Shown: in pieces, positions 30,667 to 50,428 of the stretch
Numbering within the stretch: position 1 is the first letter of the stretch
How the letters are laid out: each line of letters starts with the position of its first letter
Sequence record: MW749006.1
Direction: 5' to 3' (one strand)
Length of the DNA stretch: 64,000 nt
Program-made: the position numbers and the translations under genes
The notes under the pieces: generated by a model
What the model was told of the DNA's origin: nothing
Database searches by the model: none
The model's input: only the letters and a program-made list of their open reading frames with translations

Positions 30667-30714
30667 CTTAGAGACTATACAGAATACATCTGTTAGGACA
30701 TTGGAGTAATAATT

Positions 30715-36679: not shown

Positions 36680-36726
36680 CCACCAAGAAGCCTAATAAGC
36701 TTCTTGGTGGTAGTGTTCTTTTTTTC
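36680..36726 (+). terminator. Intrinsic terminator
   Basis: ccaccaagaagc-ctaataa-gcttcttggtgg followed by a T-tract. Confidence 0.8.
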
Positions 36727-36737: not shown

Positions 36738-36797
36738 CTGAAATTCTTACAGTTACATATATATTACCTAGAGAGATACAGTGTAATTCTATACTGT
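36738..36797 (+). promoter_or_regulatory. 60-bp promoter (copy 7) + leader hairpin module, paired with 49095-49154
   Basis: 54/60 identical to 49095-49154; contains tacatatatattac and tacagtgta-attc-tatactgt. Confidence 0.8.
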
Positions 36798-36819
36798 ATA
36801 ATTATTGTTGGAGGTCTCT

Positions 36820-37104
36820 ATGTGTAATTTATCAGCTTTAGTTAATGGAGATCTCACTGATCGCCAGATACTATCAGTTAAGAAACTAGATGAAGTTCGT
36901 AAAGAAGGACTACCTTTAGTAGAACGCATTCCGTACATAATGGAATGTATGTTCGAAATGGAACTCTCTTTTGAGTACGTTGAAAGTTTTATTGTTAAGT
37001 TGATTAACAGAGCCAAAGAAAGACACTTAAAAGAAGTGTCTTCTAATTTAACAAACCTAGACACTGAGTTGATGGAGTTATCTCCACGGGTGTTTCTAGG
37101 TTAA
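36820..37104 (+). CDS. Hypothetical protein in a monocistronic cassette
   Basis: GGAGG RBS then ATG 36820. Confidence 0.65.
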   Translation: MCNLSALVNGDLTDRQILSVKKLDEVRKEGLPLVERIPYIMECMFEMELSFEYVESFIVKLINRAKERHLKEVSSNLTNLDTELMELSPRVFLG

Positions 37105-37147
37105 GAAGGAACACATAACCGACGTTTAATAAAGTATAGTTTAAAGA

Positions 37148-37187
37148 AACCACTACCCGGCTAACGCTAGGTAGTGGTTTCTTTTTT
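37148..37187 (+). terminator. Intrinsic terminator; exact reverse complement of the 49461 hairpin
   Basis: aaccactacccggctaacgctaggtagtggtt followed by tcttttttc. Confidence 0.85.
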
Positions 37188-37193
37188 CTTTCT

Positions 37194-39626
37194 TTACAAC
37201 TCAATTACTTCTACATCTCTAAAGTTAGCTAGAGTCTGGTCTACATGTGTGATCAAGAAGATCTGACTGTAGAAACTACCTGACATCAAACTAAAGATTA
37301 AGTTAAACAACTTAGCTCTATGGTTAGTGTCTAGTGTTAAACCAAACTCATCTAAGAACAAACAACTCCCTTCTAACCCTAACAACCTGTACATCACTAA
37401 CTTAAAACTAAGATTGATGATCTCCTTCATACCGTTAGATACTAAGTTGATATCGTCTATAGTCATCTTGTCTTCTACCTCTACCTTAAACTTATAGTTC
37501 AAAGCTTCACTCTCTATATCTAGAGGACGCAGTATCATCTTGTAATCCCAGATACCACGGATAGTGTTATTGATGTTGTTAATTATGTTGTTAAGGAAAC
37601 TACTCACTGACTTAGCAATAATACCGTTCTTAGGTGATAGTTCATCTAGAGTGATGTTAAGTACTTTAGAGTTCTCTTGGTAGTCTTCTATTAATTTCTT
37701 AGCTTGTTCTACGGAGTAAGAGATAGTCTTGTGGTGTGCTAACTCATTCTCAGTCTCTACTATGATTACCTTTGACTTTGTTAAGTCAGTGTCTATAGTC
37801 GCTATGATCGCGTCTACAACGTTTGAGAGGTTACTGGTAGTGACATTAGTCCTAGACGTTTCTATCTCAGTGTGGAGCTTATCAAGGTACGTGTGGAGAG
37901 TGTTAGCTCTTTGTATGTGAGAAAGATTAGCTAGTAAGTCTTTCTTCTTAGCTTGTAGCTCAAACGCTAAGCTACTTAGTGTATTAACTTCTTCTTCTAT
38001 ATTAGAGAGAGATGTATTACGTAATGTATTTAGAGTTTCTAGACCTTCGTGTATCTCTGATAGTCTAGTGTCTATTTCTGTTAATCTTCTAAGGTACTTA
38101 ACATCTAAAGCAGCTTGTGCTATGACTGTCATTATCTTAGGTGGATCTTCGTAGACGTAACCTAATGAATTTACTCTATTCCAAACTTCTTGAAGAGATT
38201 CTCTAGTAACAGAAACAAGACGACTAAACTGTCTGTGTTGGTTGAAGTACTCTTGTTGTTGCTCTTGAATAGCTTCTATCTCTTTAACTTTAGTCTGTGC
38301 TTTATGTTTGTCCCCTAGAACTGTCTGTAGCTTTGTTCTAGCATCTTTTAAGAGAGTAGGGATATCCTTGGGTGACCAAGTGTATTCACAGCTAGGACAG
38401 GTCGTGGTGTCGTTAGAGGAGGTGTAGTCTTCTATAGCTTTCTCTAAACGAATCTCTTCTTGAATAGCTTTGTTAAGAAGTTCGTTGTAGTGTCTTAGGT
38501 TGTTATCAGCCGCGTAAGCTGAATCTCTAGAATACTTAAGTATGTTGTCTACCGTTGGGTTAGGTTGCATCTCACTTAGTATCTCAGGTAGAGATGTTTC
38601 TAACTGATATATCTCATTAGAGTAGAGAGTTACCTTTGACTTGTCTTTAAGTAGGGTAAGAGAAGACTCTAGATTAGATTGCTCCATAGCTAGATGTGCT
38701 TCTTCTTGTAGTAGAGAATCTACGTCTACTGAAGCTAACAAGGATAAAGCTTTACGTTCCTTATCTTTTTCCTCTAGTGTAGTGTAGAGTTGATTGAGTT
38801 GAAAGTCTACTACGGATAGTTCTGAGTTATACTTAGTAGTGTACTTAGGTATATCACCACGAGGGAAAGATGTTCTTAGAAGATAGTACCTTTTGTTAAG
38901 GTCTTTTAACTTCATAGTTAAGTCTTTGTGTGTGTGGTAGAGATCTAACTGAGATCCATCTGACTTATGTTTGTAAAGGGTTGTTCTCATCTCTAGAAGT
39001 AAGTCACTGTAATCTTTAGTTCTTTGTAGTGTAGCGTTAAGAGTTTCAAGACGAGTAGTGTCTGAAAGTTTAGCTTCTTCACGTTGTAGTATAGACGCTT
39101 GAGACTTTAATAGTAACTCATTGTTCTTTAGCTCTTCTCGCAGCTTCTCGTACGCTTCTAAGACACTATCTATGTTAAGGTGAGTGATAGTATTGAATAA
39201 CTTCTTACGTGCAAGGAGCGACATACTAGTGAAGTTCTCTTTACCAACAAAGATGTCATGTACTACTTGAGAGATATTAAAGTGTTTAAGAACTAATGCT
39301 CTTTGTGTAGATACAATAGCTGCAGTGTTTAATTCTTCTCCATTCATAACGAATCTAAACTTAGCTGACTTCTCTGTGAAGTCTGAGATAAGAATATACT
39401 TGTCATGGTCTTTCTCTATATGTATCTCTTTGTATCCACCTTGATTGAAGTCGTTCTTATCTGAAGGTAGTGGAGTAAGTTCATTGAAGAGAGAAGACTT
39501 ACCAGATCCATTAGGACCTGAGATCATGGTTAATTTGTTTGTTGGGTTGAAGGTATGTTCAAAGGTGTTATCGTCTCTGAGTGGCATACGTTTAAAGTTA
39601 ACTAGTTGTATGTAAGTGATGAACAT
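37194..39626 (-). CDS. sbcC: SbcC/Rad50-like SMC ATPase (phiKZ gp165-like)
   Basis: ISGPNGSGKSS Walker A, coiled coil, CPSC zinc hook, VSNGMKE signature, FLDEFG Walker B, ITH. Confidence 0.9.
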   Translation of the reverse strand: MFITYIQLVNFKRMPLRDDNTFEHTFNPTNKLTMISGPNGSGKSSLFNELTPLPSDKNDFNQGGYKEIHIEKDHDKYILISDFTEKSAKFRFVMNGEELNTAAIVSTQRALVLKHFNISQVVHDIFVGKENFTSMSLLARKKLFNTITHLNIDSVLEAYEKLREELKNNELLLKSQASILQREEAKLSDTTRLETLNATLQRTKDYSDLLLEMRTTLYKHKSDGSQLDLYHTHKDLTMKLKDLNKRYYLLRTSFPRGDIPKYTTKYNSELSVVDFQLNQLYTTLEEKDKERKALSLLASVDVDSLLQEEAHLAMEQSNLESSLTLLKDKSKVTLYSNEIYQLETSLPEILSEMQPNPTVDNILKYSRDSAYAADNNLRHYNELLNKAIQEEIRLEKAIEDYTSSNDTTTCPSCEYTWSPKDIPTLLKDARTKLQTVLGDKHKAQTKVKEIEAIQEQQQEYFNQHRQFSRLVSVTRESLQEVWNRVNSLGYVYEDPPKIMTVIAQAALDVKYLRRLTEIDTRLSEIHEGLETLNTLRNTSLSNIEEEVNTLSSLAFELQAKKKDLLANLSHIQRANTLHTYLDKLHTEIETSRTNVTTSNLSNVVDAIIATIDTDLTKSKVIIVETENELAHHKTISYSVEQAKKLIEDYQENSKVLNITLDELSPKNGIIAKSVSSFLNNIINNINNTIRGIWDYKMILRPLDIESEALNYKFKVEVEDKMTIDDINLVSNGMKEIINLSFKLVMYRLLGLEGSCLFLDEFGLTLDTNHRAKLFNLIFSLMSGSFYSQIFLITHVDQTLANFRDVEVIEL

Positions 39627-39701
39627 GTCTATAGTCCTTATCTGATCATTGGATGTTTCCTTTAGTTCTTTTTGAATAGAAGAATAGGGAAGTTATTTAG
39701 C

Positions 39702-39715
39702 TACATATATAATAG
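39702..39715 (+). promoter_or_regulatory. Promoter motif copy 8 (tacatatataatag)
   Basis: In the divergent intergenic region upstream of the XRE gene. Confidence 0.6.
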
Positions 39716-39903
39716 ATAGAAGTTAATAGTGAGTAATAAAAAACTCACAGTAATATTTGTTGGTCTTCTCTTTCTTATCTAAGGAAGGGAAACCTAAGGA
39801 AGGGAAGGTTTAAAGACATAGATATAGAGAGAGAGTATAGAGGAATAGTAAGTGTAGAGAGATATACTCTCTATAGTCATTAACCTAGTGAGTGTTACTT
39901 GTT

Positions 39904-40257
39904 ATGAGTTTAAGTGAACGTTTAAAGGAGTTAAGAGAGAATAAGAAAGTATCACTACAAACAGTAGCTGATAGTGTTGGTGTAACTAAACCCCATATAT
40001 GGGAGTTAGAGAAAGGTACATCTAAGAATCCTAGCATTAGTTTAATAGTTAGCTTATGTGTTTACTATAATGTTACTGTAGACTATCTACTTGGAGTTAG
40101 TGTTGATAGTTCTAATCCTTTAACGTTGTACTTCGAAAGGACACTAAAGAAGTCTGGTATTCGTGAGTTAAGTGTTGATGATATGGATGTTTTGACACTG
40201 GCTATTGATATGGCGATAGCTCTCATAAAACAACGGAAAGAAAGTAATAAGGACTAG
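39904..40257 (+). CDS. XRE-family (HTH_3) transcriptional regulator
   Basis: LSERLKELRENKKVSLQTVADSVGVTKPHIWELEKG...PS...YYNVTVDYL. Confidence 0.9.
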   Translation: MSLSERLKELRENKKVSLQTVADSVGVTKPHIWELEKGTSKNPSISLIVSLCVYYNVTVDYLLGVSVDSSNPLTLYFERTLKKSGIRELSVDDMDVLTLAIDMAIALIKQRKESNKD

Positions 40258-40260
40258 GTT

Positions 40261-40608
40261 ATGTCAGTACGCATTAATTTTGATCTAGCAGTAGAAGGTA
40301 AGACTGAGTGGTCTTACAATAAGGTATTACCGACAGAGAATAGTCTTGTTATACAGAGTTATGCTGAGCGGGTTATCAAGGATATAGTGGATGGTATTCG
40401 TGTAAGAGTATTTCGTTTGAACGAATTAGGTTGGGATTCTTCTTACACTACGGAGTATGAGAGTTCTTTACGTAACTTGTTAAGTGGAGTGTTTAGAGTT
40501 AGTTGTATAGCCCAGGATACTATTCACAAACAATATCCTTGTAAAGACAGCATTATGTTAGCTACAATTATTACTCCTTGTGTTACTGGTGTAAAGAGTT
40601 TAGTATAA
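40261..40608 (+). CDS. Hypothetical protein
   Basis: 115-aa ORF. Confidence 0.6.
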   Translation: MSVRINFDLAVEGKTEWSYNKVLPTENSLVIQSYAERVIKDIVDGIRVRVFRLNELGWDSSYTTEYESSLRNLLSGVFRVSCIAQDTIHKQYPCKDSIMLATIITPCVTGVKSLV

Positions 40609-40689
40609 ACTATTGAGAAGGGGTGGCTTAGGCTGCTCCTTCTTATTATTATTTTATTGTGAATGAGATGATTATTTAAGGGGAAGATT

Positions 40690-41598
40690 ATGAGTTTAGT
40701 TAAGAACGAAGACGGTAGTTATACTGTTAATGCTACTAAGTTAGATGTTAAGAATGAAAGTAATCAGATTTGGAAGAGTCAGCTTGTAAAGGCTATTTTG
40801 GATAATGCTGATAGTTCATTTAGAACTAAGTTGAAAGAAGGTGGTGTGTATTCTAACTGGGGATCACCCACACCTTCTAAAGACATGTCTATTGAGGAAA
40901 GTTTTGAGTTCTATACACAAACAAATACTGAAGATACATGTGCTATCGTTGTAGATTGCAACTTGGAGGAAGATAACGTAGTACAAGTACGTTTCCGTCC
41001 TTTCGGTCCAAAGGGACATCTACTACAGTCTTTAATAGAGGGAGGAATTAAACCAACTTTCGGCATACGAAGTATTGGTGAGGTTAATTACGACGAAACA
41101 CACACACAGATCGTTTCGGTTAAAGAGATAATTACTTTAGATGTAGTTACTAAGGGTCTTAAGGACCTAACATCAAAACTTTTCTTTCCGGAACTTCAGA
41201 CAGTTTACAATGACCCTGATGTGGTGTTGGTTGACTTAGATAACATTGCTGCTAAATATTCCGTTAAAGGTGAAGAATTAGAACGCATACCTTTAGAAGA
41301 AGTCTTAACTACCACACGCGAAACAGTTGTGTCTCCCGATAATTTTAAACATGTCAGTGGTGATATCTACATAGTTAGAACTCAAGCGGGTTTAAAGAAT
41401 GCACTTAAACAGTACGTTAACCAACACAACACTGAAGACCTTAGAGAAGCACGATACTATCTAGTAGGTTATCCTAAGTCGTATCCTTCTGTAGTTTCAT
41501 TCTCTACAGAGTACCAAGGATATCACTATGTAAAGGTTAACTGTGTGCATGTTAATAAATTAACAAAAGCTATTACTGAATCGGAGAATAAAATATGA
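40690..41598 (+). CDS. Second prohead-protease-fold paralog fused to an unknown C-terminal domain
   Basis: GGVYSNWGSP (cf. GALYAEVGHP), FRPFGPKG, PTFGIRSIG, IITLDVV. Confidence 0.5.
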   Translation: MSLVKNEDGSYTVNATKLDVKNESNQIWKSQLVKAILDNADSSFRTKLKEGGVYSNWGSPTPSKDMSIEESFEFYTQTNTEDTCAIVVDCNLEEDNVVQVRFRPFGPKGHLLQSLIEGGIKPTFGIRSIGEVNYDETHTQIVSVKEIITLDVVTKGLKDLTSKLFFPELQTVYNDPDVVLVDLDNIAAKYSVKGEELERIPLEEVLTTTRETVVSPDNFKHVSGDIYIVRTQAGLKNALKQYVNQHNTEDLREARYYLVGYPKSYPSVVSFSTEYQGYHYVKVNCVHVNKLTKAITESENKI

Positions 41599-42242
41599 TC
41601 ATGTCAGATAAGTGGTTGATTAAGAATCTACATAAACTAATGACTGGAGGTAGCAGAGGCGCTGTACGGTACGTTGACCGTGAGACAGGTATTCCTTTAG
41701 CTAACAACTTTCAAATGGGTAGAGAGCTTCCTGGGGACGCTAGACGAGTTGTTTCGTATGGTGTTAGTAGTTATGGTTACGATGTTCGTTTAGATAACAA
41801 TGTTAATCACATCCGTATCTTTAGTAACGTCAAGGTTACAGAGATTAATCCTAAGAAGATGAGTGAAGATAACTTCTATCAACCGACTGTTTTAGTAGAT
41901 GAAGATGGTGGTGAGTACGTGTTGATTCCACCTCACTCCTATCTACAAGCTCCTACGGTTGAGTACTTTGATATACCTAGAGATATCATGGTGGTTGTGT
42001 TGGGTAAGAGCACATATGCTCGTAGTGGGGTTGTGTGTAACGTTACTCCTATTGAACCAGGATTTCAAGGTAACGTAGTTATTGAGTTAGCTAACGTTAC
42101 TAGCTCTCATGTTCGTTGTTACTTGAATGAAGGAGTAGCTCAGTTTCTATTCTTCCAAGGGAATGAACCTTGTGGTTTAAGCTACGCTGACAAAGGTGGT
42201 AAGTATCAAGGTCAGACGGGTATGACTATGGCTAAGGTATAG
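41595..42242 (+). CDS. dcd: dCTP deaminase
   Basis: SYGVSSYGYDVRL, GKSTYARSG, VTPIEPGFQG, EGVAQFLF, GKYQGQ. Confidence 0.93.
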   Translation: MIMSDKWLIKNLHKLMTGGSRGAVRYVDRETGIPLANNFQMGRELPGDARRVVSYGVSSYGYDVRLDNNVNHIRIFSNVKVTEINPKKMSEDNFYQPTVLVDEDGGEYVLIPPHSYLQAPTVEYFDIPRDIMVVVLGKSTYARSGVVCNVTPIEPGFQGNVVIELANVTSSHVRCYLNEGVAQFLFFQGNEPCGLSYADKGGKYQGQTGMTMAKV

Positions 42243-42262
42243 TTTTGGAGATAGTTACAAGT

Positions 42263-42334
42263 ACATATATAGTACATAGACTACTGAGCTATTCATTTAG
42301 CTTAGTAGTAAACTAACACACTTTAAAGAAGGTA
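42263..42334 (+). promoter_or_regulatory. Promoter motif copy 9 + leader stem-loop + RBS module (paired with 11464-11536)
   Basis: acatatatagtacatagactactgagctattcatttagcttagtag...aaggta. Confidence 0.75.
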
Positions 42335-42341
42335 TTACAAT

Positions 42342-42530
42342 ATGACTACTGTAGAAGAAAACTCCGAGTTAAGTAAAATCTTGCAAGAAAACTTAAAGGA
42401 AAGAGAACAGTTTAAGAAAGAAGGTAAACTTCGATCTAAAGAAGAACTAGATTCTTTACAGAAACAACAATTTCTAAACGTTAATAAGAACTTCGGTTCA
42501 ATGGGTAACTTTGTAAAGAATAAGGAATAG
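42342..42530 (+). CDS. Small hypothetical protein
   Basis: 62-aa ORF directly after the promoter module. Confidence 0.6.
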   Translation: MTTVEENSELSKILQENLKEREQFKKEGKLRSKEELDSLQKQQFLNVNKNFGSMGNFVKNKE

Positions 42531-42533
42531 CGT

Positions 42534-43106
42534 ATGTCTGAATACAAAGTAATCTTCAGTAATCCTAATCTATTAATCTATGTTGATTTAAACGAACAAG
42601 ATCAACGTAGTCTATATGTTAAAGAAGCTATAACTAATGTAGGTTTTAATTCTAGATTTCCTCACGGACTAACTGTTTATTTGAATCACTCTCGTAACAA
42701 GTTAATCTTCCAGTTCACAGGACCCGGTAAGAAACGTACTCTTTGTACTTTAAACATGTCTACAGTTGAAGGAGCTGCGTCTGTTCTTGAAACATATCGT
42801 AGATTCCTTAAGAGAGTATACGATAGAACTACTCAGTTGTATGATCTTAGTTTGTCTCAAGGTTGTGGTGCTATCTTATATAAACGGAAATTACCATTTG
42901 TGTATGATACTACTGTAGGGGATAAGGTACACTTCTACAATCCCTTTACTAAGAAGACTGCTTATTTAGCTAAGACAGACGACCCAGCTCTTAAACGAAA
43001 ACAACGTAAGGTTTCCAAAGAGATCTTACTGGAGATGAGAACATATAGAGTCTCACACAGAGACGTGTTAGGTTCTATAGTGTATAAAGGATTACGTAAA
43101 AGGTAA
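42534..43106 (+). CDS. Hypothetical protein, tandem paralog A
   Basis: Shares FSN.NL.IY, GF..RFP.GL, FQ[FY]TGP.KKRT and DRTT.L[YF]DL with the next gene. Confidence 0.75.
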   Translation: MSEYKVIFSNPNLLIYVDLNEQDQRSLYVKEAITNVGFNSRFPHGLTVYLNHSRNKLIFQFTGPGKKRTLCTLNMSTVEGAASVLETYRRFLKRVYDRTTQLYDLSLSQGCGAILYKRKLPFVYDTTVGDKVHFYNPFTKKTAYLAKTDDPALKRKQRKVSKEILLEMRTYRVSHRDVLGSIVYKGLRKR

Positions 43107-43112
43107 AGTCCG

Positions 43113-43703
43113 ATGAAGTCATATGTCGCTGTTAAGGAACAGAGTAGAGTAGATGTCTTTAGCAATGATAATTTAGATATTTACTTAACTTTAGATGCAA
43201 AAGAACAACGTAGGTTAGTAGTTATTAGTCCAGACACTGGAAAGGGTTTCTCTGTTAGGTTCCCTAAAGGGTTAGTTATCTACTACGGTGTAGTTGATTC
43301 TAAACTTAAGTTCCAATACACAGGACCTAATAAGAAAAGAACTATAAACTCTACGGTTATATATAAAGTTGACTCACCAGACGTTGTTCTTGATATGTAT
43401 AAGAACCACTTAGAGAAAGTATTTGATAGAACTACTAGACTGTTTGATCTAAACATCACTCAGTCCTACGGTTCTTTAATCTACGGTGTTAACGGTAATA
43501 GAGCTTTCATTCATCCAAGGTCTAAAGAGAACAAGGTAGACTACTATGATCCTGTTCTCAAAAAGAGTTCCTACTTGACAACTAAAGACAATCCACATAG
43601 GGTTGACATAGAGTTGAAGAAATCCAAAGAGATGAAAGATAAACTAGCTGGGTATATAGTAACTCATAAACAAATTATAAGTTCTATTAAAAGGATTCGA
43701 TAA
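43113..43703 (+). CDS. Hypothetical protein, tandem paralog B
   Basis: See paralog A. Confidence 0.75.
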   Translation: MKSYVAVKEQSRVDVFSNDNLDIYLTLDAKEQRRLVVISPDTGKGFSVRFPKGLVIYYGVVDSKLKFQYTGPNKKRTINSTVIYKVDSPDVVLDMYKNHLEKVFDRTTRLFDLNITQSYGSLIYGVNGNRAFIHPRSKENKVDYYDPVLKKSSYLTTKDNPHRVDIELKKSKEMKDKLAGYIVTHKQIISSIKRIR

Positions 43704-44012
43704 ATGAGTATGAGAGTAGTTACACTTACTATCACAGTAGACAATCTCGGAACATTAACTGTTCTTAGATATTTACCAGTGACGAAAGGAGGTAAGATCT
43801 TTCTTGCCTCTATTAAGTCTATGGATCTCGCTATGAGAACTGAAGTACCTAAATGTAAGAAACTAAAGTCGTTAGATAAAAATGACTTAATGGTATACAT
43901 TAAAGACTGTGTAGCTACAATGATTAACTACGACAGTTATATGGAAAACATTAACTTAGATCGTACTCTTAATGTTAGTGTTAAGTGTACTTTTACTATT
44001 AGGAAGTTTTAG
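43704..44012 (+). CDS. Hypothetical protein
   Basis: 102-aa ORF. Confidence 0.6.
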   Translation: MSMRVVTLTITVDNLGTLTVLRYLPVTKGGKIFLASIKSMDLAMRTEVPKCKKLKSLDKNDLMVYIKDCVATMINYDSYMENINLDRTLNVSVKCTFTIRKF

Positions 44013-44013
44013 C

Positions 44014-44340
44014 ATGAACGCGGATTTATTTATACACGCAACTATCACTGATAACGAAAAACGTGTGTTGTTCTATAGAAGTTTACCGGTCTTCTATCAA
44101 AGTGGAGATAAGACATTAAACGAATCTATAGTTAGAGAAGTTCTTAATAAACTTAAGTCAGAACACCATATGTGGGCTGTGAGTACTGGAATATATTCTA
44201 GTCCGGAAGCAGGTTTTATCGGTGACAAATTCAACCAGTTCTTAGATTTAATTAAACCTCACCTTTATAACCCTACCGGTATAGAGTCTTCAGAACTCAT
44301 TGAGTCTGATAGATACTTTCGTATTTGGGTTACAACTTAA
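44014..44340 (+). CDS. Hypothetical protein
   Basis: ATG 44014 after AGGA RBS. Confidence 0.6.
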   Translation: MNADLFIHATITDNEKRVLFYRSLPVFYQSGDKTLNESIVREVLNKLKSEHHMWAVSTGIYSSPEAGFIGDKFNQFLDLIKPHLYNPTGIESSELIESDRYFRIWVTT

Positions 44341-44355
44341 TTTGGGAGTGGTAAC

Positions 44356-44649
44356 ATGAAACGTTATGTAGTTTGGAATCAAGCTAAGACTATGGGGTTG
44401 TTTACAACTGATAAAGAATTAGCTCTTAGAGTTTCTAGTAACGCTTTTACTGGATGTTACGGTAAAGACGGTAGAGTAATAGACATAGCTACTTCTTTTA
44501 GTGCTGAGTGGTGTAAAGTTAAAGGGCAGTGCACTATGGAAAAGGTAGATCGTAAATTCCCTTGGCCAGTTGGAGTTGAGCACTTTACATTAGAATTTGA
44601 TCAAGGCGAACCTGTCTGGTTAACCCTTAAACTACACGGAGACATTTAA
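44356..44649 (+). CDS. Hypothetical protein
   Basis: 97-aa ORF with GGGAG RBS. Confidence 0.6.
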   Translation: MKRYVVWNQAKTMGLFTTDKELALRVSSNAFTGCYGKDGRVIDIATSFSAEWCKVKGQCTMEKVDRKFPWPVGVEHFTLEFDQGEPVWLTLKLHGDI

Positions 44650-44651
44650 AC

Positions 44652-44981
44652 GTGAATATTGATTACAATGTAGAGTTTGAAATCATGAAAGAAAACCACT
44701 CCATCTTTTCCCGTAAGGACTTGATGGAAGCTTGTGACTTCACAGGTAAACCTAACGTCGGTTACTTGAAAGAACATTTGAACGAAACATATAACCAGCT
44801 AGACAACTCCAGTGTGAGAGATCACTACAACTTATGGTTGGATAAAGAAGTCTTAGATTTCTTTGAGCGCTTCTGTAATCAACTACAGGAATGTAAAGCT
44901 CCTTTAACTAGAATGTCTAGAGTAGAGACTACTAAGAACGGAGTCAAGTTTAAACTATCTATACAACAAACAGGCACTTAG
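44652..44981 (+). CDS. Hypothetical protein
   Basis: 109-aa ORF. Confidence 0.6.
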   Translation: MNIDYNVEFEIMKENHSIFSRKDLMEACDFTGKPNVGYLKEHLNETYNQLDNSSVRDHYNLWLDKEVLDFFERFCNQLQECKAPLTRMSRVETTKNGVKFKLSIQQTGT

Positions 44982-44982
44982 A

Positions 44983-45120
44983 ATGTCTATTAGAAAACTA
45001 ACTATTTTTGCTGTGGTTTGGAAAGACTTACCTTATGTACGCTTTTCATGGACATCTGCCTCTTTCCCGGGTAACCCTGATGAAAGAAGAAGCAGAGTTG
45101 GTTCATTAAAGAATTCCTAA
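44983..45120 (+). CDS. Small ORF (45 aa), possibly a gene remnant
   Basis: ATG 44983 to TAA 45120 fills the gap between ORFs. Confidence 0.35.
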   Translation: MSIRKLTIFAVVWKDLPYVRFSWTSASFPGNPDERRSRVGSLKNS

Positions 45121-45163
45121 CGAAGTAAACACTATTCCTAAATTGAAGAAGAAGGTAAACAAC

Positions 45164-45541
45164 ATGACACACTTTGTATTAGAGTTAGAAGTTATCCTCA
45201 CACAACAACCCGTATTTAAGATGTCACTACCCGTACTTGCGACTACAGATGACTACGAACAGAAACGTAACTTTCGTCGTGCGTTAGATAACTGTAAAGA
45301 CGGTTACGTTGATTGGAGTAATTCCCAAGAAGAATCTAAAGGTGGGTTTGGGGATTTTGCAACTTTTGGTTTAAGAAAGAATAGACTCGAATACCTTTTA
45401 GGTGAGTTTGGTTTAGTGGAAGAGTTCATTAACTACGTTGAAAATTTAATTGAAGAGAATATAAATCTACCAAGTGGTATTACTTATGGTAAGTTTATTG
45501 GTCCAGATCTATTCTACCAAGTTAGTGTAAAGGAGATATAG
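45164..45541 (+). CDS. Hypothetical protein
   Basis: ATG 45164 with AAGGT RBS. Confidence 0.6.
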   Translation: MTHFVLELEVILTQQPVFKMSLPVLATTDDYEQKRNFRRALDNCKDGYVDWSNSQEESKGGFGDFATFGLRKNRLEYLLGEFGLVEEFINYVENLIEENINLPSGITYGKFIGPDLFYQVSVKEI

Positions 45542-45543
45542 TA

Positions 45544-45882
45544 GTGGAAGACTATTACAGAATTAATCTAGAAGTTAACAACAAAGAAAACAAAAAACTC
45601 TTCGTTGAGTCCTGTGAATTTACACAGAACACTTCTACACTCACTATAGATAATTTATCTGGTTTACTGGAATCACTACGCTTCCTTAAAGATAAATTTA
45701 AACTGTGGATGAAAGAAGATACTGATAGTAACTGTGACGAGTTCACTATCGACAAGTTTCTTGATCCGGTTATTAAGACACTATACTTCGATGGTTGTAA
45801 TAAACCAAACGAATTACATGTGATGCAAAGGGTAAGTGTTGATTTATATGTACACATCTACATAGATAAATTAATCAAATAG
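45544..45882 (+). CDS. Hypothetical protein
   Basis: 112-aa ORF. Confidence 0.6.
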   Translation: MEDYYRINLEVNNKENKKLFVESCEFTQNTSTLTIDNLSGLLESLRFLKDKFKLWMKEDTDSNCDEFTIDKFLDPVIKTLYFDGCNKPNELHVMQRVSVDLYVHIYIDKLIK

Positions 45883-45895
45883 GAAGGTATTAGAT

Positions 45896-46222
45896 ATGTT
45901 GTCACATATAGTAACAGTTAGTTTAAAGGATAAAACAGGTAACGTTCTTTTCAGTTCAAGGCTAGCAACTGAGAAGTACGACCCAAGTAGCAGAGACGTT
46001 GTAAGATACGGAGTTCACCACACCTTTAATCTTATCCTCAAATCGTACGAGCAATGGTTCGAACGAGAATTCCAGTCCATTTCTATTGAAGAATACGTTA
46101 AAGACTTTAGAACTCTTTTAGAGGAACACGACCTTAATCCAAACGGTAGTGACGAGCTTAACGTTTCAATAGACGGAGACAAGTTCCTACACTTAAGTGT
46201 CATCAGTTTAACACACCAATAA
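45896..46222 (+). CDS. Hypothetical protein
   Basis: 108-aa ORF. Confidence 0.6.
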   Translation: MLSHIVTVSLKDKTGNVLFSSRLATEKYDPSSRDVVRYGVHHTFNLILKSYEQWFEREFQSISIEEYVKDFRTLLEEHDLNPNGSDELNVSIDGDKFLHLSVISLTHQ

Positions 46223-46304
46223 CTTTACTCGGAGTTCTACTTAACTTCACAAAGAATACAGTGGAACTCTTTAGAGTATATCTTTAACTTAACGGATACA
46301 TCCC

Positions 46305-46727
46305 ATGCTTGATCTTAAAACAATAGTAGACAACTACACTAGAGAAGAAAACATAGTCCCTGTAGAAGTCCTCCCTTTACTATTCGACGCACATAGCGAA
46401 GAAGAACAGTTAGTTGAAATTGAGAAAGACCACAAAGCAATCACCAAAATTAGTAATCGGGAAGAACACTTCCTAATGAAAGTGGTTAACGCTAACCCTT
46501 GGTGTGTGGGTGAGATTTTAAATCCTAGCGAATACGTGGCACTCGAAGCTATCAGTGTTAATCCGTTAGCTATAGCGGTTATTGATGAACCGTCTTTAAG
46601 GGTGTGTAAATATGCCCTCGGGAAAGATCCTAAGGTTGCGATCTATATACCTGGGGAGTATTATGATCAGTTAGGTTTATCGGAGAAATGTCAACCTAAA
46701 CCTTTCTTTCATAACTTACCTAGTTAA
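46305..46727 (+). CDS. Short helical-repeat protein (DUF4116-like)
   Basis: Repeats V..NP..[VI]..I..PS..V...A[IL]. Confidence 0.5.
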   Translation: MLDLKTIVDNYTREENIVPVEVLPLLFDAHSEEEQLVEIEKDHKAITKISNREEHFLMKVVNANPWCVGEILNPSEYVALEAISVNPLAIAVIDEPSLRVCKYALGKDPKVAIYIPGEYYDQLGLSEKCQPKPFFHNLPS

Positions 46728-46740
46728 AAGCATACCGAAC

Positions 46741-46781
46741 TAACTGGAGGGTAATTCCTCTGGTTAGTTTCTTTTTTCTTT
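46741..46781 (+). terminator. Intrinsic terminator
   Basis: aactggaggg-taat-tcctctggtt followed by a T-tract. Confidence 0.7.
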
Positions 46782-46819
46782 TCTTATCAAATTCTCTGAA
46801 TAGAATCAGGAGTAGTAGG

Positions 46820-47710
46820 ATGTTAAATTTATCAGAACAAACGGTAGGTTATATAGAGACTACCTTTAATGAAGTAATGAAACCAATCATCTACAACACC
46901 TTCTCTATGTTAGAGACCTTTGGTATTAGTTTCTACGAGGATAAGTATGTAGACTTACTACACCGTGAGTTCAGCATTGACTCTAGTGATAAGCAAGATA
47001 CTTTTACTTCTATGTTAAGAGAAGATGTTTTCGATATCCTTAAAGAACACGCAGTGTTATTAGATCTAGAACAAGAACCTAATCTAACAGAACTTAACCA
47101 TATAGCTAAAGGTTTGTTGATGTTCCAAACCCAAGAAGACTACCAACCTTTAACATACATCTTAAACAACGAGACTTCAGATAAAGAGAAGTTCATTGCA
47201 GTTATCCATACACTAACTGACTTCTCTATCTATCGTCTAATGGAGTTAGTAGAAAGTGTTGGTGTTAACTTGATTCCTTCAATGACTCAGTTCGCTAAAG
47301 ATAGTCAAGAGGAAGAAACACCAGAACAGTTCGATAAAGAATGGTTAGTTCACGTAGCTAAGTTCTTTAAGTTCATTGACGAAACTCCATGTCTAGGTTT
47401 AGAACTCTTCACTAGTGGTTATGTTAACCTAGAACTCTCTGAGGTGATTGATCTTCTTCCATATGAGCTAGACTCTAAGATCAAACCGAACATCTCCCTA
47501 AACGCACCACAAGCTGCCTTAGACGTACTCAGTGTTCTTCTAGTCACTAAAGATAACTACACCAAACCTTTAGAGAAACTAGATGAACATCTTTACACTT
47601 TCTTTTCTGACTTAACAGAAGTGAGTAGAGTAAAACCAATCATTGTAACTATGGTAACTGACTTCAGTAACTACCTATTAGTTCATAAACAAGTAGAGGC
47701 AGTCCAATGA
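46820..47710 (+). CDS. Conserved chimallivirus protein upstream of vRNAP beta' (phiKZ gp79-like)
   Basis: 296 aa; ATGA overlap with the RNAP gene; synteny. Confidence 0.5.
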   Translation: MLNLSEQTVGYIETTFNEVMKPIIYNTFSMLETFGISFYEDKYVDLLHREFSIDSSDKQDTFTSMLREDVFDILKEHAVLLDLEQEPNLTELNHIAKGLLMFQTQEDYQPLTYILNNETSDKEKFIAVIHTLTDFSIYRLMELVESVGVNLIPSMTQFAKDSQEEETPEQFDKEWLVHVAKFFKFIDETPCLGLELFTSGYVNLELSEVIDLLPYELDSKIKPNISLNAPQAALDVLSVLLVTKDNYTKPLEKLDEHLYTFFSDLTEVSRVKPIIVTMVTDFSNYLLVHKQVEAVQ

Positions 47711-49002
47711 CAGCTAAGTTAGATTACTTCAAGTTAGCTATACAGAACTTAAAGGTACTGGAGAGTAAAGACTGGTATCTATATACAATAGCTATTCCAA
47801 TCCTTAAAGCTATGAAACAACCAGAAGAAGAATTGGCTCTATTCACTAAACCAGATGGTCTCTACTATAGCACTTATGTAAGTGGTACTTGGGAAGCGGT
47901 TAAGATCTCAGATTATCGCGAAGGTGAACCTCTCTTTCAGTTTGAAGATAAGATCAACGCAGATCCTAGTTGGTTACCTACTATCTCTAAACCAATAGAA
48001 ACAACTATAGGACGTATGTTAGTTAATGCTTTTGTTCTATACGGTTCCTTTGGTGTGAAGGTTCCTTATCGTAATGAAATAATGGAAGTTAAAACTTTCA
48101 ACGAGATATTGATTAGACAACTTAGAGATGAAGACAAAGCTAAAGGAGATGATATTAAAGTATCGGAGATGGTGCAGTGTTTCGATAGACTTACTTTCAT
48201 CAGTAGTTTAGCGACTATCATTAACGTAGCTGCTACTAAGAAAACTATATCTGCACCGGAAGGACTAGAGAAGAAGAAGAAAGAACTACTAGCTAAATAT
48301 GAAGGTCAATTAACCGACCCTGTTAAGTTAGCTGAGTTTGAAGGGGAGTTGGATAAGTTCGATAGAGACTTCTTATCTGACGATCCAGACTCTGATAAGA
48401 TACTTAGTAGTAAAACACGTACAGCTAGACGTAAGATGTATTTAGCCTTTGGTAAACCTTCTGGATTTGACAATAACGCAACAGCTATTACCTCATCACT
48501 CATGGATGGTCTAGAAGTAAGTAGACAAAACTTACCACAATACATGGATGACTTACGATTCGGTAGTTATTCTCGTGGTGGTTCAACAGCTAAGTCCGGT
48601 TATATATACAAGATTCTACAGAGAGCTTTGACTAGTCTAAACGTTGTAGGTACTCCTTGTAATACAACTACAGGTTTAGTTAGATATATAACAGATAAAG
48701 ACTATATGAACTTAATGGATCGTTCTGTTAAAGTGTCTGGTAAATGGAAGATACTTTCATCACCAGAAGAAGCTGAACATTTCGTTGGTAAAGACACAGA
48801 GATACGTTCACCTATGTATTGTACCTCTCCAGGTGGTACGGTTTGTTATAGTTGTCTGAGTGAGAGTTATAAAGACAGTGAGGCTGGTATCACTAACTTA
48901 GCTGCAGTGTTCTCAGATGCGTTAATGAGTTTGTTTCTTAAAGCTATGCACTCGACTTCTACGTATCTAACAACAGTCACTATGGATGATCTCTGTACAT
49001 AG
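47707..49002 (+). CDS. rpoC: Virion RNA polymerase beta' subunit fragment (phiKZ gp80-like)
   Basis: TTIGRMLVN, SYSRGGSTAKSGYIYKILQRA (bridge helix), IRSPMYC..PGGTVCYSCL Zn motif, FLKAMH. Confidence 0.8.
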   Translation: MTAKLDYFKLAIQNLKVLESKDWYLYTIAIPILKAMKQPEEELALFTKPDGLYYSTYVSGTWEAVKISDYREGEPLFQFEDKINADPSWLPTISKPIETTIGRMLVNAFVLYGSFGVKVPYRNEIMEVKTFNEILIRQLRDEDKAKGDDIKVSEMVQCFDRLTFISSLATIINVAATKKTISAPEGLEKKKKELLAKYEGQLTDPVKLAEFEGELDKFDRDFLSDDPDSDKILSSKTRTARRKMYLAFGKPSGFDNNATAITSSLMDGLEVSRQNLPQYMDDLRFGSYSRGGSTAKSGYIYKILQRALTSLNVVGTPCNTTTGLVRYITDKDYMNLMDRSVKVSGKWKILSSPEEAEHFVGKDTEIRSPMYCTSPGGTVCYSCLSESYKDSEAGITNLAAVFSDALMSLFLKAMHSTSTYLTTVTMDDLCT

Positions 49003-49094
49003 ATCTACAACCCTCCACAGCGCCCTTCTAGAGAAATCTAGAGGGCGTTGTTAGGGTTATGTTTATAAGTATCTAGAAACGACTCACAGTGTAT

Positions 49095-49154
49095 CTGAAA
49101 TCTTTATGGTTACATATATAATACCTAGAGAGATACGGTGTAATTCTATACTGT
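49095..49154 (+). promoter_or_regulatory. 60-bp promoter (copy 10) + leader hairpin module, paired with 36738-36797
   Basis: ctgaaatctttatggttacatatataatacctagagagatacggtgtaattctatactgt. Confidence 0.8.
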
Positions 49155-49218
49155 GTCATTATTACTGAAGCTATTCCTTACATATAGGATAGCAATCACT
49201 GTCCTGGAGGACAACACT

Positions 49219-49455
49219 ATGTTTAATTTACAAGACATCCTTGACACTATAACAAACATCAATCCAACAACAAAAGTCTTTGATCGACCATTCGAAGACA
49301 TTATCAAAGAAGTTAGACACACTACCGAAGACGTAGTTGTTAGTTCAGCTTCTAATCAAACCGATCCAAAGGCTTCTACATATTTTAAAGTAGGAAGTAA
49401 AGAGTATGTTGCTCGCTATCGTGGAGCATACACTCAGATCTCTTTAGTGGCATAA
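49219..49455 (+). CDS. Hypothetical protein in a monocistronic cassette
   Basis: GGAGGA RBS then ATG 49219. Confidence 0.65.
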   Translation: MFNLQDILDTITNINPTTKVFDRPFEDIIKEVRHTTEDVVVSSASNQTDPKASTYFKVGSKEYVARYRGAYTQISLVA

Positions 49456-49460
49456 AGATT

Positions 49461-49505
49461 AACCACTACCTAGCGTTAGCCGGGTAGTGGTTTCTTTTTT
49501 TTTTT
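49461..49505 (+). terminator. Intrinsic terminator; inverted copy of the 37148 hairpin
   Basis: aaccactacctagcgttagccgggtagtggtt followed by a T-tract. Confidence 0.85.
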
Positions 49506-49510
49506 CTTTC

Positions 49511-50428
49511 TTAGTACTGTTTAATGAAGTCATTGATTCTATCTAACACGTCTTTCTTACCTAAGTTAAACACAGGGATGTTATTCTCACTAGCTATCTT
49601 AATAGCCATACCAGTCCCACCTGTCTTACTAGTTACTTCACTAGCTTTCTCAGCTCCGTCTGAAGTATAACAAACAACAAACTCAACTGGAGTATTCAAG
49701 TTATAGCCAAACACTTGACCTACGTTTCTAGCGTGTAACTTACGTACACCTTGAGATAGTCTATCCCAGACAGGATGTAACTTAGAAGCAAATTCCATAT
49801 GTTTAAGAGTAGGTAAGTGTTGAGAAGAATGCTCATTAAAACCTTCCCACGGTAACCAGATCTCTTTCTTACCTTTTACTTTATCACATCCAACTTCGAA
49901 TGCTTTATCAGCACCGACAGCAGCTCCTGAACGTAGTGTAAGACCTTTCTGTGCTAAGACCTCACCTATCCTAACCATTATGTCTAAGATGTCGTCAGGA
50001 GTCTCTCGTGAACCTATACCAGCGTAGTACTTAATTTCTATATACTTCTGCCAGTCTTTAGGAAAACTACAATTCTTACCGCATCCTTTAAACAAAGGAG
50101 CTATTTGATCTTTAGTGAATCCAGCTAAACCAGTACCCACTCCAGTTACCCAGAACTTCTTATCTGGATTACTGTTAACAAACTGTTTAAAGGAGCTAAC
50201 ATATCCTTTAATAACGTCTAATGGTAATGTTTTTATTTCGTTGTCTTTAGTTGGTATAGCATAACACTTTCCAGTTACACCTAAACCAATACCTATCTCT
50301 GCATTAAATAGATTTCTAGCAACTAGAGCAGCACCTTTACCATGTATGCCTGCTAAGTTACTTCCAAATACCCAATAGTAATCACTACCTTCTGGTGGTA
50401 GATCACCATGATTGTGATAATGAAACAT
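49511..50428 (-). CDS. Fusion of macro-like (A1S_2505-type) domain and SLOG/DprA-like domain
   Basis: N-terminal VFGSNLAGIHGKGAA, CYAIPTK, VTGVGTGLAG; C-terminal YAGIGSRETP, LRSGAAVGADKAFE, HARN, TGGTGMA. Confidence 0.75.
   Translation of the reverse strand: MFHYHNHGDLPPEGSDYYWVFGSNLAGIHGKGAALVARNLFNAEIGIGLGVTGKCYAIPTKDNEIKTLPLDVIKGYVSSFKQFVNSNPDKKFWVTGVGTGLAGFTKDQIAPLFKGCGKNCSFPKDWQKYIEIKYYAGIGSRETPDDILDIMVRIGEVLAQKGLTLRSGAAVGADKAFEVGCDKVKGKKEIWLPWEGFNEHSSQHLPTLKHMEFASKLHPVWDRLSQGVRKLHARNVGQVFGYNLNTPVEFVVCYTSDGAEKASEVTSKTGGTGMAIKIASENNIPVFNLGKKDVLDRINDFIKQY

Follow-up and report, generated by a model that had tools for sequence, protein, structure and literature searches.

Two one-gene units of the Bacillus jumbo phage AgentSmith are probably built from repeated promoter, leader and terminator modules

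Why should two single-gene units of one phage genome carry nearly the same switches at both ends and yet enclose unrelated genes? The units, cassettes A and B, lie in a window (the whole stretch of 64,000 nucleotides analyzed here) that corresponds to bases 136234-200233 of record MW749006.1, Bacillus phage vB_BspM_AgentSmith. A preliminary description had attributed them to an undescribed cassette-shuffling system of a jumbo phage, in which a standard slot would hold an exchangeable, probably anti-host, ORF. The assignment to a jumbo phage was well founded, as AgentSmith is phiKZ-like, possesses a tubulin-like gene and encodes its own split RNA polymerases, with two sets of subunits. With respect to the slot, our analysis favored another answer: A and B are probably ordinary one-gene early units assembled from regulatory parts of which the phage has several copies, and their switches would be nearly identical because one promoter family and one terminator hairpin are used repeatedly in this phage.

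Shared ends and unrelated cargo

Alignment of the two promoter-leader regions (36738-36797 and 49095-49154) gave the 54 identical positions out of 60 that had been reported, and the repeat extended to 68 of 81 over a wider stretch (36733-36813 and 49090-49170), a length and identity far beyond chance. The a/g difference within the leader stem, said to preserve pairing, indeed yields an A-U pair in one copy and a G-U pair in the other. The shared 32-bp terminator element is inverted, as had been stated: the hairpin of A is the exact reverse complement of that of B, with unchanged arms around a flipped central segment of 12 nt (cf. Table 1). The non-coding ends of the two cassettes are 84% and 100% identical, and one leader is about 45 nt longer than the other. 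Also in agreement with the preliminary description, each cassette holds a single small ORF, preceded by a good Shine-Dalgarno sequence (gp178 in A, gp197 in B), and adjoins a convergent minus-strand gene, that for SbcC (gp179) in A and a DprA-like one (gp198) in B. Homologs of gp179 were found in phiKZ-like phages and many metagenomic jumbo-phage contigs, while the 90% cluster of gp198 has 15 members.

Table 1. Window positions of the features of cassettes A and B and of related copies
Feature	Position	Strand	Description
Promoter + different leader hairpin	11443..11527	+	Paired with 42242-42326, 82% over 85 nt
gp158 + two bracketing terminator-family hairpins	22350..23077	+	22359-22390 without T-run; 23030-23061 with T-run
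Promoter + leader, third one-gene unit (gp164, HD domain)	30639..30700	+	Terminator near 31349
Upstream terminator	36680..36717	+	12-bp stem, T-rich tail; ends 11-gene early unit gp167-gp177
Promoter A	36738..36772	+	-35-like hexamer 36738-36743; AT-rich 14-nt core 36754-36767; conserved TAGA 36769-36772
Leader stem-loop A	36775..36800	+	Predicted fold; 10-11 bp stem, 4-nt loop
gp178 (cargo A)	36820..37104	+	Annotated CDS; 94 aa, predicted all-helical ORFan
Terminator A	37148..37196	bidirectional	Family hairpin 37148-37179; T-run on + strand, A-run upstream
gp179 (SbcC-like ATPase)	37194..39626	-	Annotation; convergent with cassette A
Promoter, leader hairpin, gp180, gp181, terminator	39702..40653	+	
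Stem-loop after gp196 (RNA polymerase subunit)	49019..49050	+	Just 5' of promoter B; weak T-run
Promoter B	49095..49129	+	-35-like hexamer 49095-49100; core 49111-49124; TAGA 49126-49129
Leader stem-loop B	49132..49157	+	11 bp stem
Second hairpin + degenerate promoter-like core	49170-49195		Downstream of leader stem-loop B
gp197 (cargo B)	49219..49455	+	78 aa, predicted alpha/beta ORFan
Terminator B	49461..49513		Family hairpin 49461-49492, central 12 nt flipped, then long T-run
gp198 (DprA-like)	49511..50428	-	phrog_768, E = 2.5e-60; convergent with cassette B

The cargo genes were compared with each other, with protein and fold databases and with related phages, the latter being metagenome contigs (labeled L0xx), some of which share one sample and possibly represent the same genome. 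BLASTP indicated no relatedness between gp178 and gp197 (E = 0.9). Neither a Pfam or PHROG family nor a Foldseek match at E <= 0.001 was found for gp178, while gp197, searched among 1.84 billion representatives, fell into its own cluster only and had no family or fold match; nothing in these searches pointed to the anti-host function that had been proposed. An ortholog of gp178 is 81% identical, with 14/7/29 changes by codon position, i.e. a third-position excess, and gp197 is 96% identical at the amino acid level in L011, where the DNA is 85% identical (2/1/7 changes by codon position). Both cargo genes are small, lineage-restricted and under purifying selection, which is strong for gp197.

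Could the whole cassette have been duplicated, its ORFs then diverging past recognition? That the ORFs might be diverged paralogs had been put forward earlier as an alternative. Both unit ends are common to A and B, and small phage ORFs do evolve fast, gp178 being 81% identical where the relative's DNA is 79% identical. However, ends as well preserved as these enclose ORFs without similarity and with different predicted folds, the leaders are of unequal length, gp197 is strongly constrained, and two further module pairs also head unrelated genes, all of which makes such a history highly improbable. The modules of A and B are not private to these cassettes, since further copies occur across the window and the genome, and the early transcription units of AgentSmith comprise 1, 1, 1, 2, 5, 5, 11 and 11 genes. 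With one gene each, A and B stand at the lower end of this ordinary range.

Promoter, leader and terminator families

Both promoters belong to a family that is present 12 times in the window and about 28 times genome-wide (28 matches at >=14 bits; the 18 seed promoters are intergenic), with all copies on the + strand. The 14-nt core alone had 15 matches, compared with 6.3 expected, and 15 was reached in none of 100 shuffles. Conservation is concentrated at about -33 to -30, at about -24 to -20, in the core and in TAGA. Promoter B is among the top-scoring members; promoter A is 94% conserved in L010, compared with 79% for that contig as a whole. Family members also stand at the start of larger units (2 to 11 genes), and some precede the RNA polymerase genes gp133-134, gp102 and gp59-60. 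It is quite possible, though in our judgment less than likely, that the host sigma-A RNA polymerase rather than a phage polymerase reads them: a -35-like element with a G invariant in 18 of 18 seed promoters is separated by 16 nt from a TATAAT-like hexamer downstream of it, and the sigma-A pattern is matched at 10 of 12 positions in promoter B and 9 of 12 in promoter A, with a spacer of 16. On the other hand, the invariant C of the core and TAGA fall outside the sigma-A hexamers, the core is retained in L007, whose SbcC is only 47% identical, and the phage genome encodes two split polymerase subunit sets. Furthermore, the reports on AR9 and phiKZ-type phages describe extended AT-rich early motifs, conserved in phiKZ types at about -10, -20 and -30, as those used by the virion RNA polymerases (PMC5312081, PMC11512511), and the AgentSmith family is likewise an extended, conserved, many-copy AT-rich motif. 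This 35-nt promoter would be read early, most likely by the phage virion RNA polymerase.

A stem-loop was predicted within the first 50 nt downstream of 17 of the 18 seed promoters, with z <= -1.7 in 13 of them. Across the family, these leader hairpins are mostly different in sequence and devoid of T-runs, and the hairpin shared by A and B was found genome-wide at these two sites only. In its six copies, orthologs and paralogs together, pairing is preserved in 97% of pair cells, and each stem change, by way of G-U, still gives a standard pair, whereas three of the four loop bases vary; this retention of pairing works only in + strand RNA. The 5' stem-loop, lying a few bases past the promoter, would act at the RNA level, most likely by protecting the mRNA 5' end. 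Could it instead serve as a control site, recognized in a sequence-specific way by a protein or an RNA, so that gp178 and gp197 would form a two-gene regulon and the hairpin would be more than a relic of module copying? Its restriction to A and B, the maintenance of its stem across six copies and the better conservation of the L010 promoter-leader than of the ORF (94% vs 82%) are compatible with this. Nevertheless, in the B orthologs of L011 and L019 the stem is retained with wobble changes, but three of the four loop bases and the upper stem differ, and a search of the window against Rfam 15 at the gathering score gave no match. Moreover, structure seems to matter more than sequence, because other family promoters carry unrelated hairpins in the same place. 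We consider such a control site unlikely.

The leaders also bear on how the modules spread. Three promoter-leader pairs have leader identities of 0.90, 0.85 and 0.65, compared with a median of 0.275 for 153 pairs, and within each pair the downstream proteins are unrelated. Besides A and B, these include the copy at 11443..11527 and its partner, which precede gp139 and gp184, and the leader of the gp164 unit, which is paired with one at record position 42686. Such pairs support the view that regulatory modules have been duplicated independently of their cargo.

At the other end of each cassette, a G+C-rich hairpin lies directly before a T-run, as in an intrinsic terminator, and the earlier reading of the shared parts as a promoter with a 5' leader stem-loop plus such a terminator is thereby supported. 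The predicted fold of terminator A has -30.1 kcal/mol (z = -6.9) on the + strand and -31.5 kcal/mol (z = -6.9) on the - strand, and that of terminator B -24.3 kcal/mol (z = -4.9). The + strand T-run is present in both, while the minus-strand T-run is fair for A and weak for B; terminator A is predicted to serve both gp178 and the convergent SbcC gene. This strong hairpin would stop early transcription before an antisense run into the convergent gene, and the same hairpin would also end that gene's transcript. The family has four copies in the window and seven in the genome, four of the seven at convergent junctions. Terminator hairpins also occur directly 5' of some promoters (record 13299-13403; window 36680-36772). 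The latter, consisting of the upstream terminator and promoter A, is a terminator-promoter composite conserved in L010 and L016, and a composite of about 120 nt is shared, at 82% identity, by the gp15/gp16 junction of AgentSmith and the X1/X2 junction of L016 (genes described below). The stem-loop after gp196 is conserved in L011 and L019.

Two of the terminators bear marks of rearrangement. The site of terminator B is unflipped in five relatives, so that the flip is a derived state in AgentSmith. Small hairpin-loop inversions are found in the non-coding DNA of chloroplast spacers; there too, the loop flips in place while arms and flanks stay, but we know of no description of such an inversion for phage terminators. 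The flip could have arisen by template switching or by conversion from an oppositely oriented copy. Terminator A of AgentSmith, in turn, looks chimeric, its loop matching the first copy of L016 and its 3' flank (40 of 40 nt) the second.

Gene turnover beside the modules in relatives

If the slots were exchangeable, relatives should carry other ORFs in them. Instead, gp178 was found in its own slot in three metagenomic contigs and gp197 in two; both genes were fixed in every relative in which the respective slot was seen, the very outcome that the preliminary description had named as speaking against exchange. Gene content does vary beside the modules, and close relatives differ there by whole genes or units. 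In L016 and L017, gp178 is followed by a gene, X1, and L016 has an additional terminator-promoter-X2-terminator unit before SbcC; X1 and X2 are unrelated genes, and for neither of them, nor for gp178 and gp197, were homologs detectable outside the lineage or within AgentSmith. In L020 the leader of an RRXRR gene directly follows gp198, where cassette B would be expected, and the gp62/gp63 junction of L025 is occupied by other genes, one of them a paralog of gp158 with hairpins on both sides. The interval from SbcC to the sheath gene contains 15 genes in AgentSmith and four in L007. In AgentSmith itself, gp158 lies between the two copies of a perfect 39-nt direct repeat (22350-22388 and 23021-23059), and its bracketed arrangement recurs in L023 and L024. 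Many of the short-read contigs (e.g. L006, L010, L018, L021 and L022) stop inside repeats, as expected because the repeats are multi-copy.

These observations allow the proposed dedicated shuffling system, in which the ORF of a standard promoter-to-terminator slot would be actively exchanged in an integron-like manner, to be weighed directly. The same regulatory shell surrounds unrelated ORFs, the extra unit of L016 is bounded by terminator copies, gp158 lies between perfect repeats, RRXRR (HNH-type) genes adjoin the variable junctions of L020 and L025, and in L006 only the promoter-terminator shell of the gp180-gp181 unit is left. This shell was, however, emptied by microhomology deletions that left parts of the lost genes behind; in all relatives seen, gp178 and gp197 keep to their own slots; the modules are ordinary transcription signals, on one strand, that also head multi-gene units; and neither the record annotation nor a few Pfam/PHROG scans revealed an integrase or recombinase in the window or near either cassette. 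Integron cassettes are promoterless, end in attC and need an integrase, whereas the AgentSmith units share with them the frame around single small ORFs of unrelated function but have their own promoter and terminator; the integron combination of a site-specific recombinase, a recombination site at each cassette end and promoterless cargo is not recognizable from the annotation and these few scans. An integron-like system thus seems improbable.

In the reading of A and B as ordinary units, they look alike because promoter-leader and terminator were probably copied by recombination, independently of the genes served, and the repeats sit where relatives gain or lose genes or units because they are dispersed over regions with many small ORFans. 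We infer that the plasticity is a by-product of these repeats and of the phage's own recombination, not of a dedicated shuffling machine. Since the clearest indel junctions (L006, L010) lie at 3-8-nt microhomologies and not at modules, the chimeric-looking terminator is the single case that speaks for repeat-mediated recombination. It is possible, though doubtful, that terminator hairpins and promoter-stem-loops are portable homology patches by which single-gene early units are cut out, inserted and moved between sites and genomes; a PeSL-type mechanism (see below) would then operate in phages using their own RNA polymerases, and recombination of this kind would have left a visible mark in the terminator loop flipped in place.

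Known systems and the early map of AgentSmith

The idea is not a new one: the closest known kind of element, the PeSLs of T4-type phages (Arbiol et al. 2010, PMC2839356; Comeau et al. 2014, PMC4122927), had already been described as promoter-stem-loop cassettes mediating modular shuffling. In both systems, repeated intergenic motifs, each about 100 nt long, join an early promoter (presumably early in AgentSmith) with a stable stem-loop or terminator and lie 5' of small ORFans in plastic regions; one module type precedes unrelated genes, close relatives differ by the ORFs beside modules, and an ORF may have module copies on both sides, as does gp158. Unlike the T4-type phages, AgentSmith is a phiKZ-like Bacillus jumbo phage with its own RNA polymerases, and it probably does not use a plain host-sigma promoter, the PeSL type having a strong sigma-70-like promoter and a stem-loop that acts as terminator or attenuator. 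The AgentSmith stem-loop is located downstream, in the transcribed leader, and lacks a T-run, termination being left to a separate hairpin family. Module-to-module recombination and mini-circles, small circular DNAs arising by exchange between adjacent copies, are features of PeSLs, and several indels of the AgentSmith lineage use microhomology instead.

Conserved promoter and terminator motifs are known from phiKZ, 201phi2-1 (PMC11512511) and AR9 (PMC5312081), where an extended, highly conserved AT-rich promoter motif precedes early genes in tens of copies and terminator sequence families are present in many copies per genome, as in AgentSmith. The AgentSmith motif differs from these in sequence and in carrying an additional -35-like element, and its start site and timing are predicted ones. 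The passages searched in these reports make no mention of 5' hairpins behind almost all early promoters, and a search of the AR9 paper gave no match to the terms "hairpin" and "stem-loop". The closest parallel to the leader hairpin is provided by the 5' stem-loop mRNA stabilizers of Bacillus subtilis, e.g. the aprE leader (reviewed in PMC3997798), which likewise lie near the transcript 5' end, in a Bacillus host, and are followed by a strong ribosome-binding site; for AgentSmith, position is what suggests such a role.

The findings amount to no new kind of system. They provide a first map of the probable early promoters, terminators and 5' leader hairpins in an unstudied Bacillus jumbo phage. 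This map is useful for annotation in that units, strands and probable timing become readable from the sequence, and it also indicates sites of accessory-gene turnover. They further suggest that the layout of T4-type phages, with repeated regulatory modules and ORFan-rich variable regions, recurs in a very different lineage.

Shared modules and unrelated cargo of cassettes A and B

The sequence between window positions 36000 and 50000 matched Bacillus phage vB_BspM_AgentSmith (MW749006.1) with 100% identity, and the window corresponds to positions 136234-200233, reaching the last base of this linear record of 200,233 bp. Because the phage encodes several split RNA-polymerase subunits (gp60, gp80, gp102, gp133, gp134 and gp196), a tubulin-like protein and virion proteins of the phiKZ type, we regard it as a jumbo phage of the phiKZ/AR9 kind; a full-text search on the phage name retrieved no paper. 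CAA/CAG-rich coding repeats, corresponding to glutamine-rich stretches, occur on both strands of the window (see table), and the long minus-strand gene gp214 contains internal periodic repeats of 114 and 228 nt.

The preliminary description had presented cassettes A and B as standardised expression slots with an exchangeable ORF, and the structural observations behind it were confirmed. The 60-nt promoter-leader modules are identical at 54/60 positions, within a wider repeat of 68/81, and the single difference in the leader stem retains pairing via G-U. The terminators are 32-nt hairpins that are exact reverse complements of one another; as their arms are self-complementary, this relation amounts to a flip of the central 12 nt between identical arms, and a T-run is present on the plus strand in both. 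The cargo proteins, gp178 (94 aa) and gp197 (78 aa), are indeed unrelated (BLASTP E = 0.9), and a convergent gene adjoins each cassette, namely the SbcC gene gp179 for A and gp198, which matches a DprA-like PHROG, for B. Duplication of one cassette, with ORFs that have since diverged as paralogs, was rejected as the origin of the pair, as was an integron-like system.

Neither cargo protein was assigned to a Pfam or PHROG family, and a weak Pfam match of gp178 fell below the cutoff and was disregarded. AlphaFold models of gp178 and gp197 were of fair quality (pLDDT 79 and 80, respectively), and Foldseek searches with both against PDB and BFVD returned nothing at E <= 0.001. A phmmer (HMMER) scan of 1.84 billion representatives with gp197 recovered its own cluster alone, while a word-indexed search, which covered about 5.8 billion proteins, gave no further match for either protein past near relatives.

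Promoter, leader and terminator families

All search patterns were short (<=28 nt), degenerate and made from the window's own repeat copies. With a 14-nt promoter core derived in this way, 15 matches with at most two mismatches were found, compared with 6.3 expected. A per-column count table built from 18 intergenic plus-strand sites revealed the following conserved elements: a -35-like element with one G invariant in 18/18 seed sites, a block some 20 nt before the probable start site, the 14-nt core itself, and TAGA, which follows the core at a distance of 1 nt. Scanning with this table located 28 sites in the genome, 12 of which lie in the window; every one is on the plus strand and none on the minus strand, and 10 of the 28 were outside the training set. 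The genes downstream are small hypothetical, nucleotide-metabolism and polymerase subunit genes. Minus-strand genes, which include many virion genes and those for terminase, SbcC, one DNA-polymerase part and RNase H, have no family match. In L007, a relative from a metagenome with an SbcC of 47% identity, the motif recurs three times within 22 kb. A pattern search of IMG/VR gave one match only, on a contig of 21% G+C, which we took as chance because that contig has no similarity to AgentSmith.

The family would act as an early promoter, and its reader is probably the phage virion polymerase, since conservation reaches well beyond the sigma-A hexamers, the core is retained across deep divergence, and the motif is similar to early motifs of AR9 and phiKZ-type phages, which are extended and AT-rich (PMC5312081, PMC11512511). 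The fair -35/-10 fit of the promoter speaks for the host polymerase instead, a less likely reader but one with a substantial chance of being the right one. Conserved promoter and terminator motif families are already known in jumbo phages (PMC5312081, PMC11512511). The leader of cassette B contains another hairpin, and within it lies a degenerate promoter-like core (three mismatches); this could be what is left of an older promoter, ahead of which an A/B-type module was later placed.

A predicted stem-loop follows within 50 nt of 17/18 seed promoters (z <= -1.7 in 13/18). These leader hairpins mostly differ in sequence (median leader identity 0.275 over 153 pairs); three pairs are alike (see table), and the downstream proteins are unrelated in each of them. 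The A/B hairpins have a predicted 10-11-bp stem and a 4-nt loop. When six copies were compared (A from AgentSmith and the relatives' contigs L010 and L016; B from AgentSmith and the relatives' contigs L011 and L019), standard pairs occupied 97% of pair cells, 5/11 pairs varied, on one side only and each time through G-U, and 3/4 loop bases changed. This G-U tolerance points to a hairpin that would act as plus-strand RNA rather than as a DNA cruciform; a shuffle control added no weight, because only transitions occurred, each compatible with pairing either way, and no double compensatory change was among them. Rfam gave no match anywhere in the window. By analogy with Bacillus subtilis, where 5' stem-loops protect mRNA 5' ends (reviewed in PMC3997798), the leader hairpin probably shields the mRNA 5' end, with an insulating or attenuating role as a second option. 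A C/G-rich hairpin leader some 58 nt long is likewise repeated and lies ahead of gp142, gp145 and the two RRXRR-domain genes.

The terminator hairpin has seven genomic copies, five of them with a T-run and four at a junction with a convergent minus-strand gene. Predicted folds reached -30.1 kcal/mol (z = -6.9) for terminator A and -24.3 kcal/mol (z = -4.9) for terminator B. The small genes gp62 and gp158 are each bracketed by two copies, the upstream one lacking a T-run both times, and the copies flanking gp158 share a 39-nt perfect direct repeat. The relatives' contigs L023 and L024 show gp158 in the same bracketed arrangement. Internally, gp158 has 69-nt tandem repeats, and its form in relatives (269 aa) has three more 23-aa units. 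The loop of terminator B is flipped relative to five relatives (L011, L019, L018, L021 and L022), with arms and flanks unchanged; as all five have the unflipped loop, the flip is derived in AgentSmith. The terminator B stems of L021 and L022 contain compensating changes. The predicted terminator would bar early plus-strand transcription from the convergent recombination and replication genes, and would also end the transcripts of those genes.

Neither IMG/VR nor the GTDB genomes contained a copy of the hairpin, and its absence from GTDB indicates that it is not a common host element. Three matches to the terminator pattern in JGI metagenomes lay on contigs without similarity to AgentSmith. Two of them (contigs L013 and L014) are terminator-like hairpins whose inner bases agree with those of the AgentSmith family; we set these aside as probably due to chance or convergence.

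Coordinates of repeated and associated elements (record, MW749006.1)
Feature	Frame	Position	Detail
Terminator copy	record	13299	
Terminator copy	record	60350	
Terminator copy	record	60637	
Terminator copy	record	158592	
Terminator copy	record	159263	
Terminator A	record	173381	
Terminator B	record	185694	flipped
Terminator B, 32-nt hairpin	window	49461-49492	flipped
Leader pair		11463/42262	0.90 identity over 40 leader bases
Leader pair		A/B	0.85 identity
Leader pair	window + record	30654 + 42686	0.65 identity
Second hairpin, cassette B leader	window	49170-49195	
C/G-rich hairpin leader	window	12516-12573	
C/G-rich hairpin leader	window	14859-14916	
C/G-rich hairpin leader	record	about 71780	
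C/G-rich hairpin leader	record	about 1320-1433	
C/G-rich hairpin leader	L020	2769-2882	
gp158 with flanking hairpins	window	22350-23077	
gp158 tandem repeats	window	22476-22751	
X1/X2 start module	L016	690-720	
X1/X2 start module	L016	1445-1475	
Start-module remnant	window	37108-37120	
Terminator-like hairpin	L014	2313-2334	
Terminator-like hairpin	L013	194-215	
CAA/CAG-rich repeat	window	1974-2346	plus strand
CAA/CAG-rich repeat	window	51909-52046	minus strand
CAA/CAG-rich repeat	window	61320-62147	minus strand

The two slots and gene turnover in relatives

Megablast and tblastn searches of 50,697 phage records, made with the region and with the two cargo proteins, matched AgentSmith alone; SbcC matches in reference phage records stayed at <30% identity, and no relative was found in IMG/VR through SbcC. 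A large protein collection held one SbcC homolog at 95% and more than 100 below about 47% identity, and the 90% clusters of gp178, gp197, gp198, gp157, gp159 and gp63 had more members on short Logan/ENA contigs. Relatives are present in the public runs SRR28060971, SRR9030905, ERR8135940, ERR8135937, ERR8529195, SRR25904989, SRR11702755, SRR10769902 and in the data sets ERZ1645011, ERZ27298659 and ERZ926043. In slot A, the promoter and leader hairpin of AgentSmith recur in L010, L016 and L017, each time with an ortholog of gp178; in L010 the promoter-leader is identical at 82/87 positions versus 79% for the whole contig. In slot B, promoter, hairpin, gp197 and terminator are all present in L011 and L019. 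The distant relative L007 was set aside for this comparison, being too diverged despite the common promoter motif. Many relatives' contigs break off inside the promoter or terminator repeats, which fits multi-copy repeats breaking short-read assemblies.

The L010 ortholog of gp178 has 81% identity, its changes being distributed 14/7/29 over the three codon positions, and gp197 in L011 is 96% identical at 85% DNA identity; the cargo genes are under purifying selection. Since gp178 is kept in all three slot A contigs and gp197 in both slot B contigs, the cargo is fixed among near relatives, and it is absent beyond them. The proposed exchange of ORFs in these slots was therefore not borne out.

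Genes come and go beside the modules. In L016 (about 90% DNA identity to AgentSmith), gp178 is followed, with no terminator between, by an extra gene, X1 (196 aa). After X1 come a hairpin of the terminator family, a promoter that belongs to the family but has another leader hairpin, a second extra gene, X2 (112 aa), a second terminator copy and SbcC. X1 is present in L017 too, and in L010 the terminator lies 4 nt past the gp178 stop. No relationship was found between X1 and X2, or between either and AgentSmith. Both share a 31-nt translation-start module (small hairpin plus Shine-Dalgarno site), also found in L017; AgentSmith retains the first 13 nt of this module past the stop codon of gp178. 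Between X1 and X2 lies a composite of terminator and promoter that matches the one between gp15 and gp16 of AgentSmith (82% over 121 nt). Terminator A of AgentSmith has the loop of the first L016 copy and a 3' flank identical at 40/40 positions to the second; such a chimera is the expected trace of exchange between two copies, which is suggested only.

Another relative, L006 (about 90% DNA identity; SbcC protein 95% identical), has a homolog of the promoter at window 39702, followed almost at once by gp181's downstream terminator and then the dCTP deaminase gene. The genes gp180, gp181 and gp182 are missing, remnants of gene ends are left, and the junctions lie at 7-8-nt direct repeats, an arrangement that reads as three microhomology deletions leaving an empty promoter-terminator shell. 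L016 lacks gp180 and the promoter core of the same unit. In the relative L020, the leader element of an RRXRR-type gene lies directly past the gp198 stop and replaces terminator B and gp197; this placement of the C/G-rich leader suggests a mobile RRXRR (HNH-type) gene. At the gp62/gp63 junction of the relative L025 we found an RRXRR gene together with an ortholog of gp62, a hairpin that has the family outer stem, and a paralog of gp158 that has diverged to 64-67% identity. The frame of this paralog ends early, with one premature stop versus its relatives, and its 3' end and terminator share 93% identity with the corresponding parts of AgentSmith gp158.

Relation to known phage cassettes

The likeness of A and B would have arisen from modules copied by homologous recombination, independently of the cargo. 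The closest concept is that of the PeSLs of T4-type phages (PMC2839356, PMC4122927). These repeated cassettes combine an early promoter with a stem-loop; they are located upstream of ORFans where the genome is plastic, bring about insertions, deletions and replacements among closely related phages, and can give rise to mini-circles. AgentSmith differs in belonging to another lineage, probably with another polymerase, in having the promoter-linked stem-loop in the transcribed leader together with a separate terminator family, and in that module exchange is suggested only. In our literature search, no paper was found to extend the PeSL concept to jumbo phages; a review lists the reference without more. 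The preliminary description had also proposed a cassette-shuffling system here, as a candidate for an undescribed system, a view we do not retain: A and B are real and well structured, yet ordinary in kind. Units in the window, counted from promoter to next terminator, comprise 1 (gp164), 1 (gp178), 1 (gp197), 2, 5, 5, 11 and 11 genes, which places cassettes A and B among the smallest versions of a single standard transcription-unit design.
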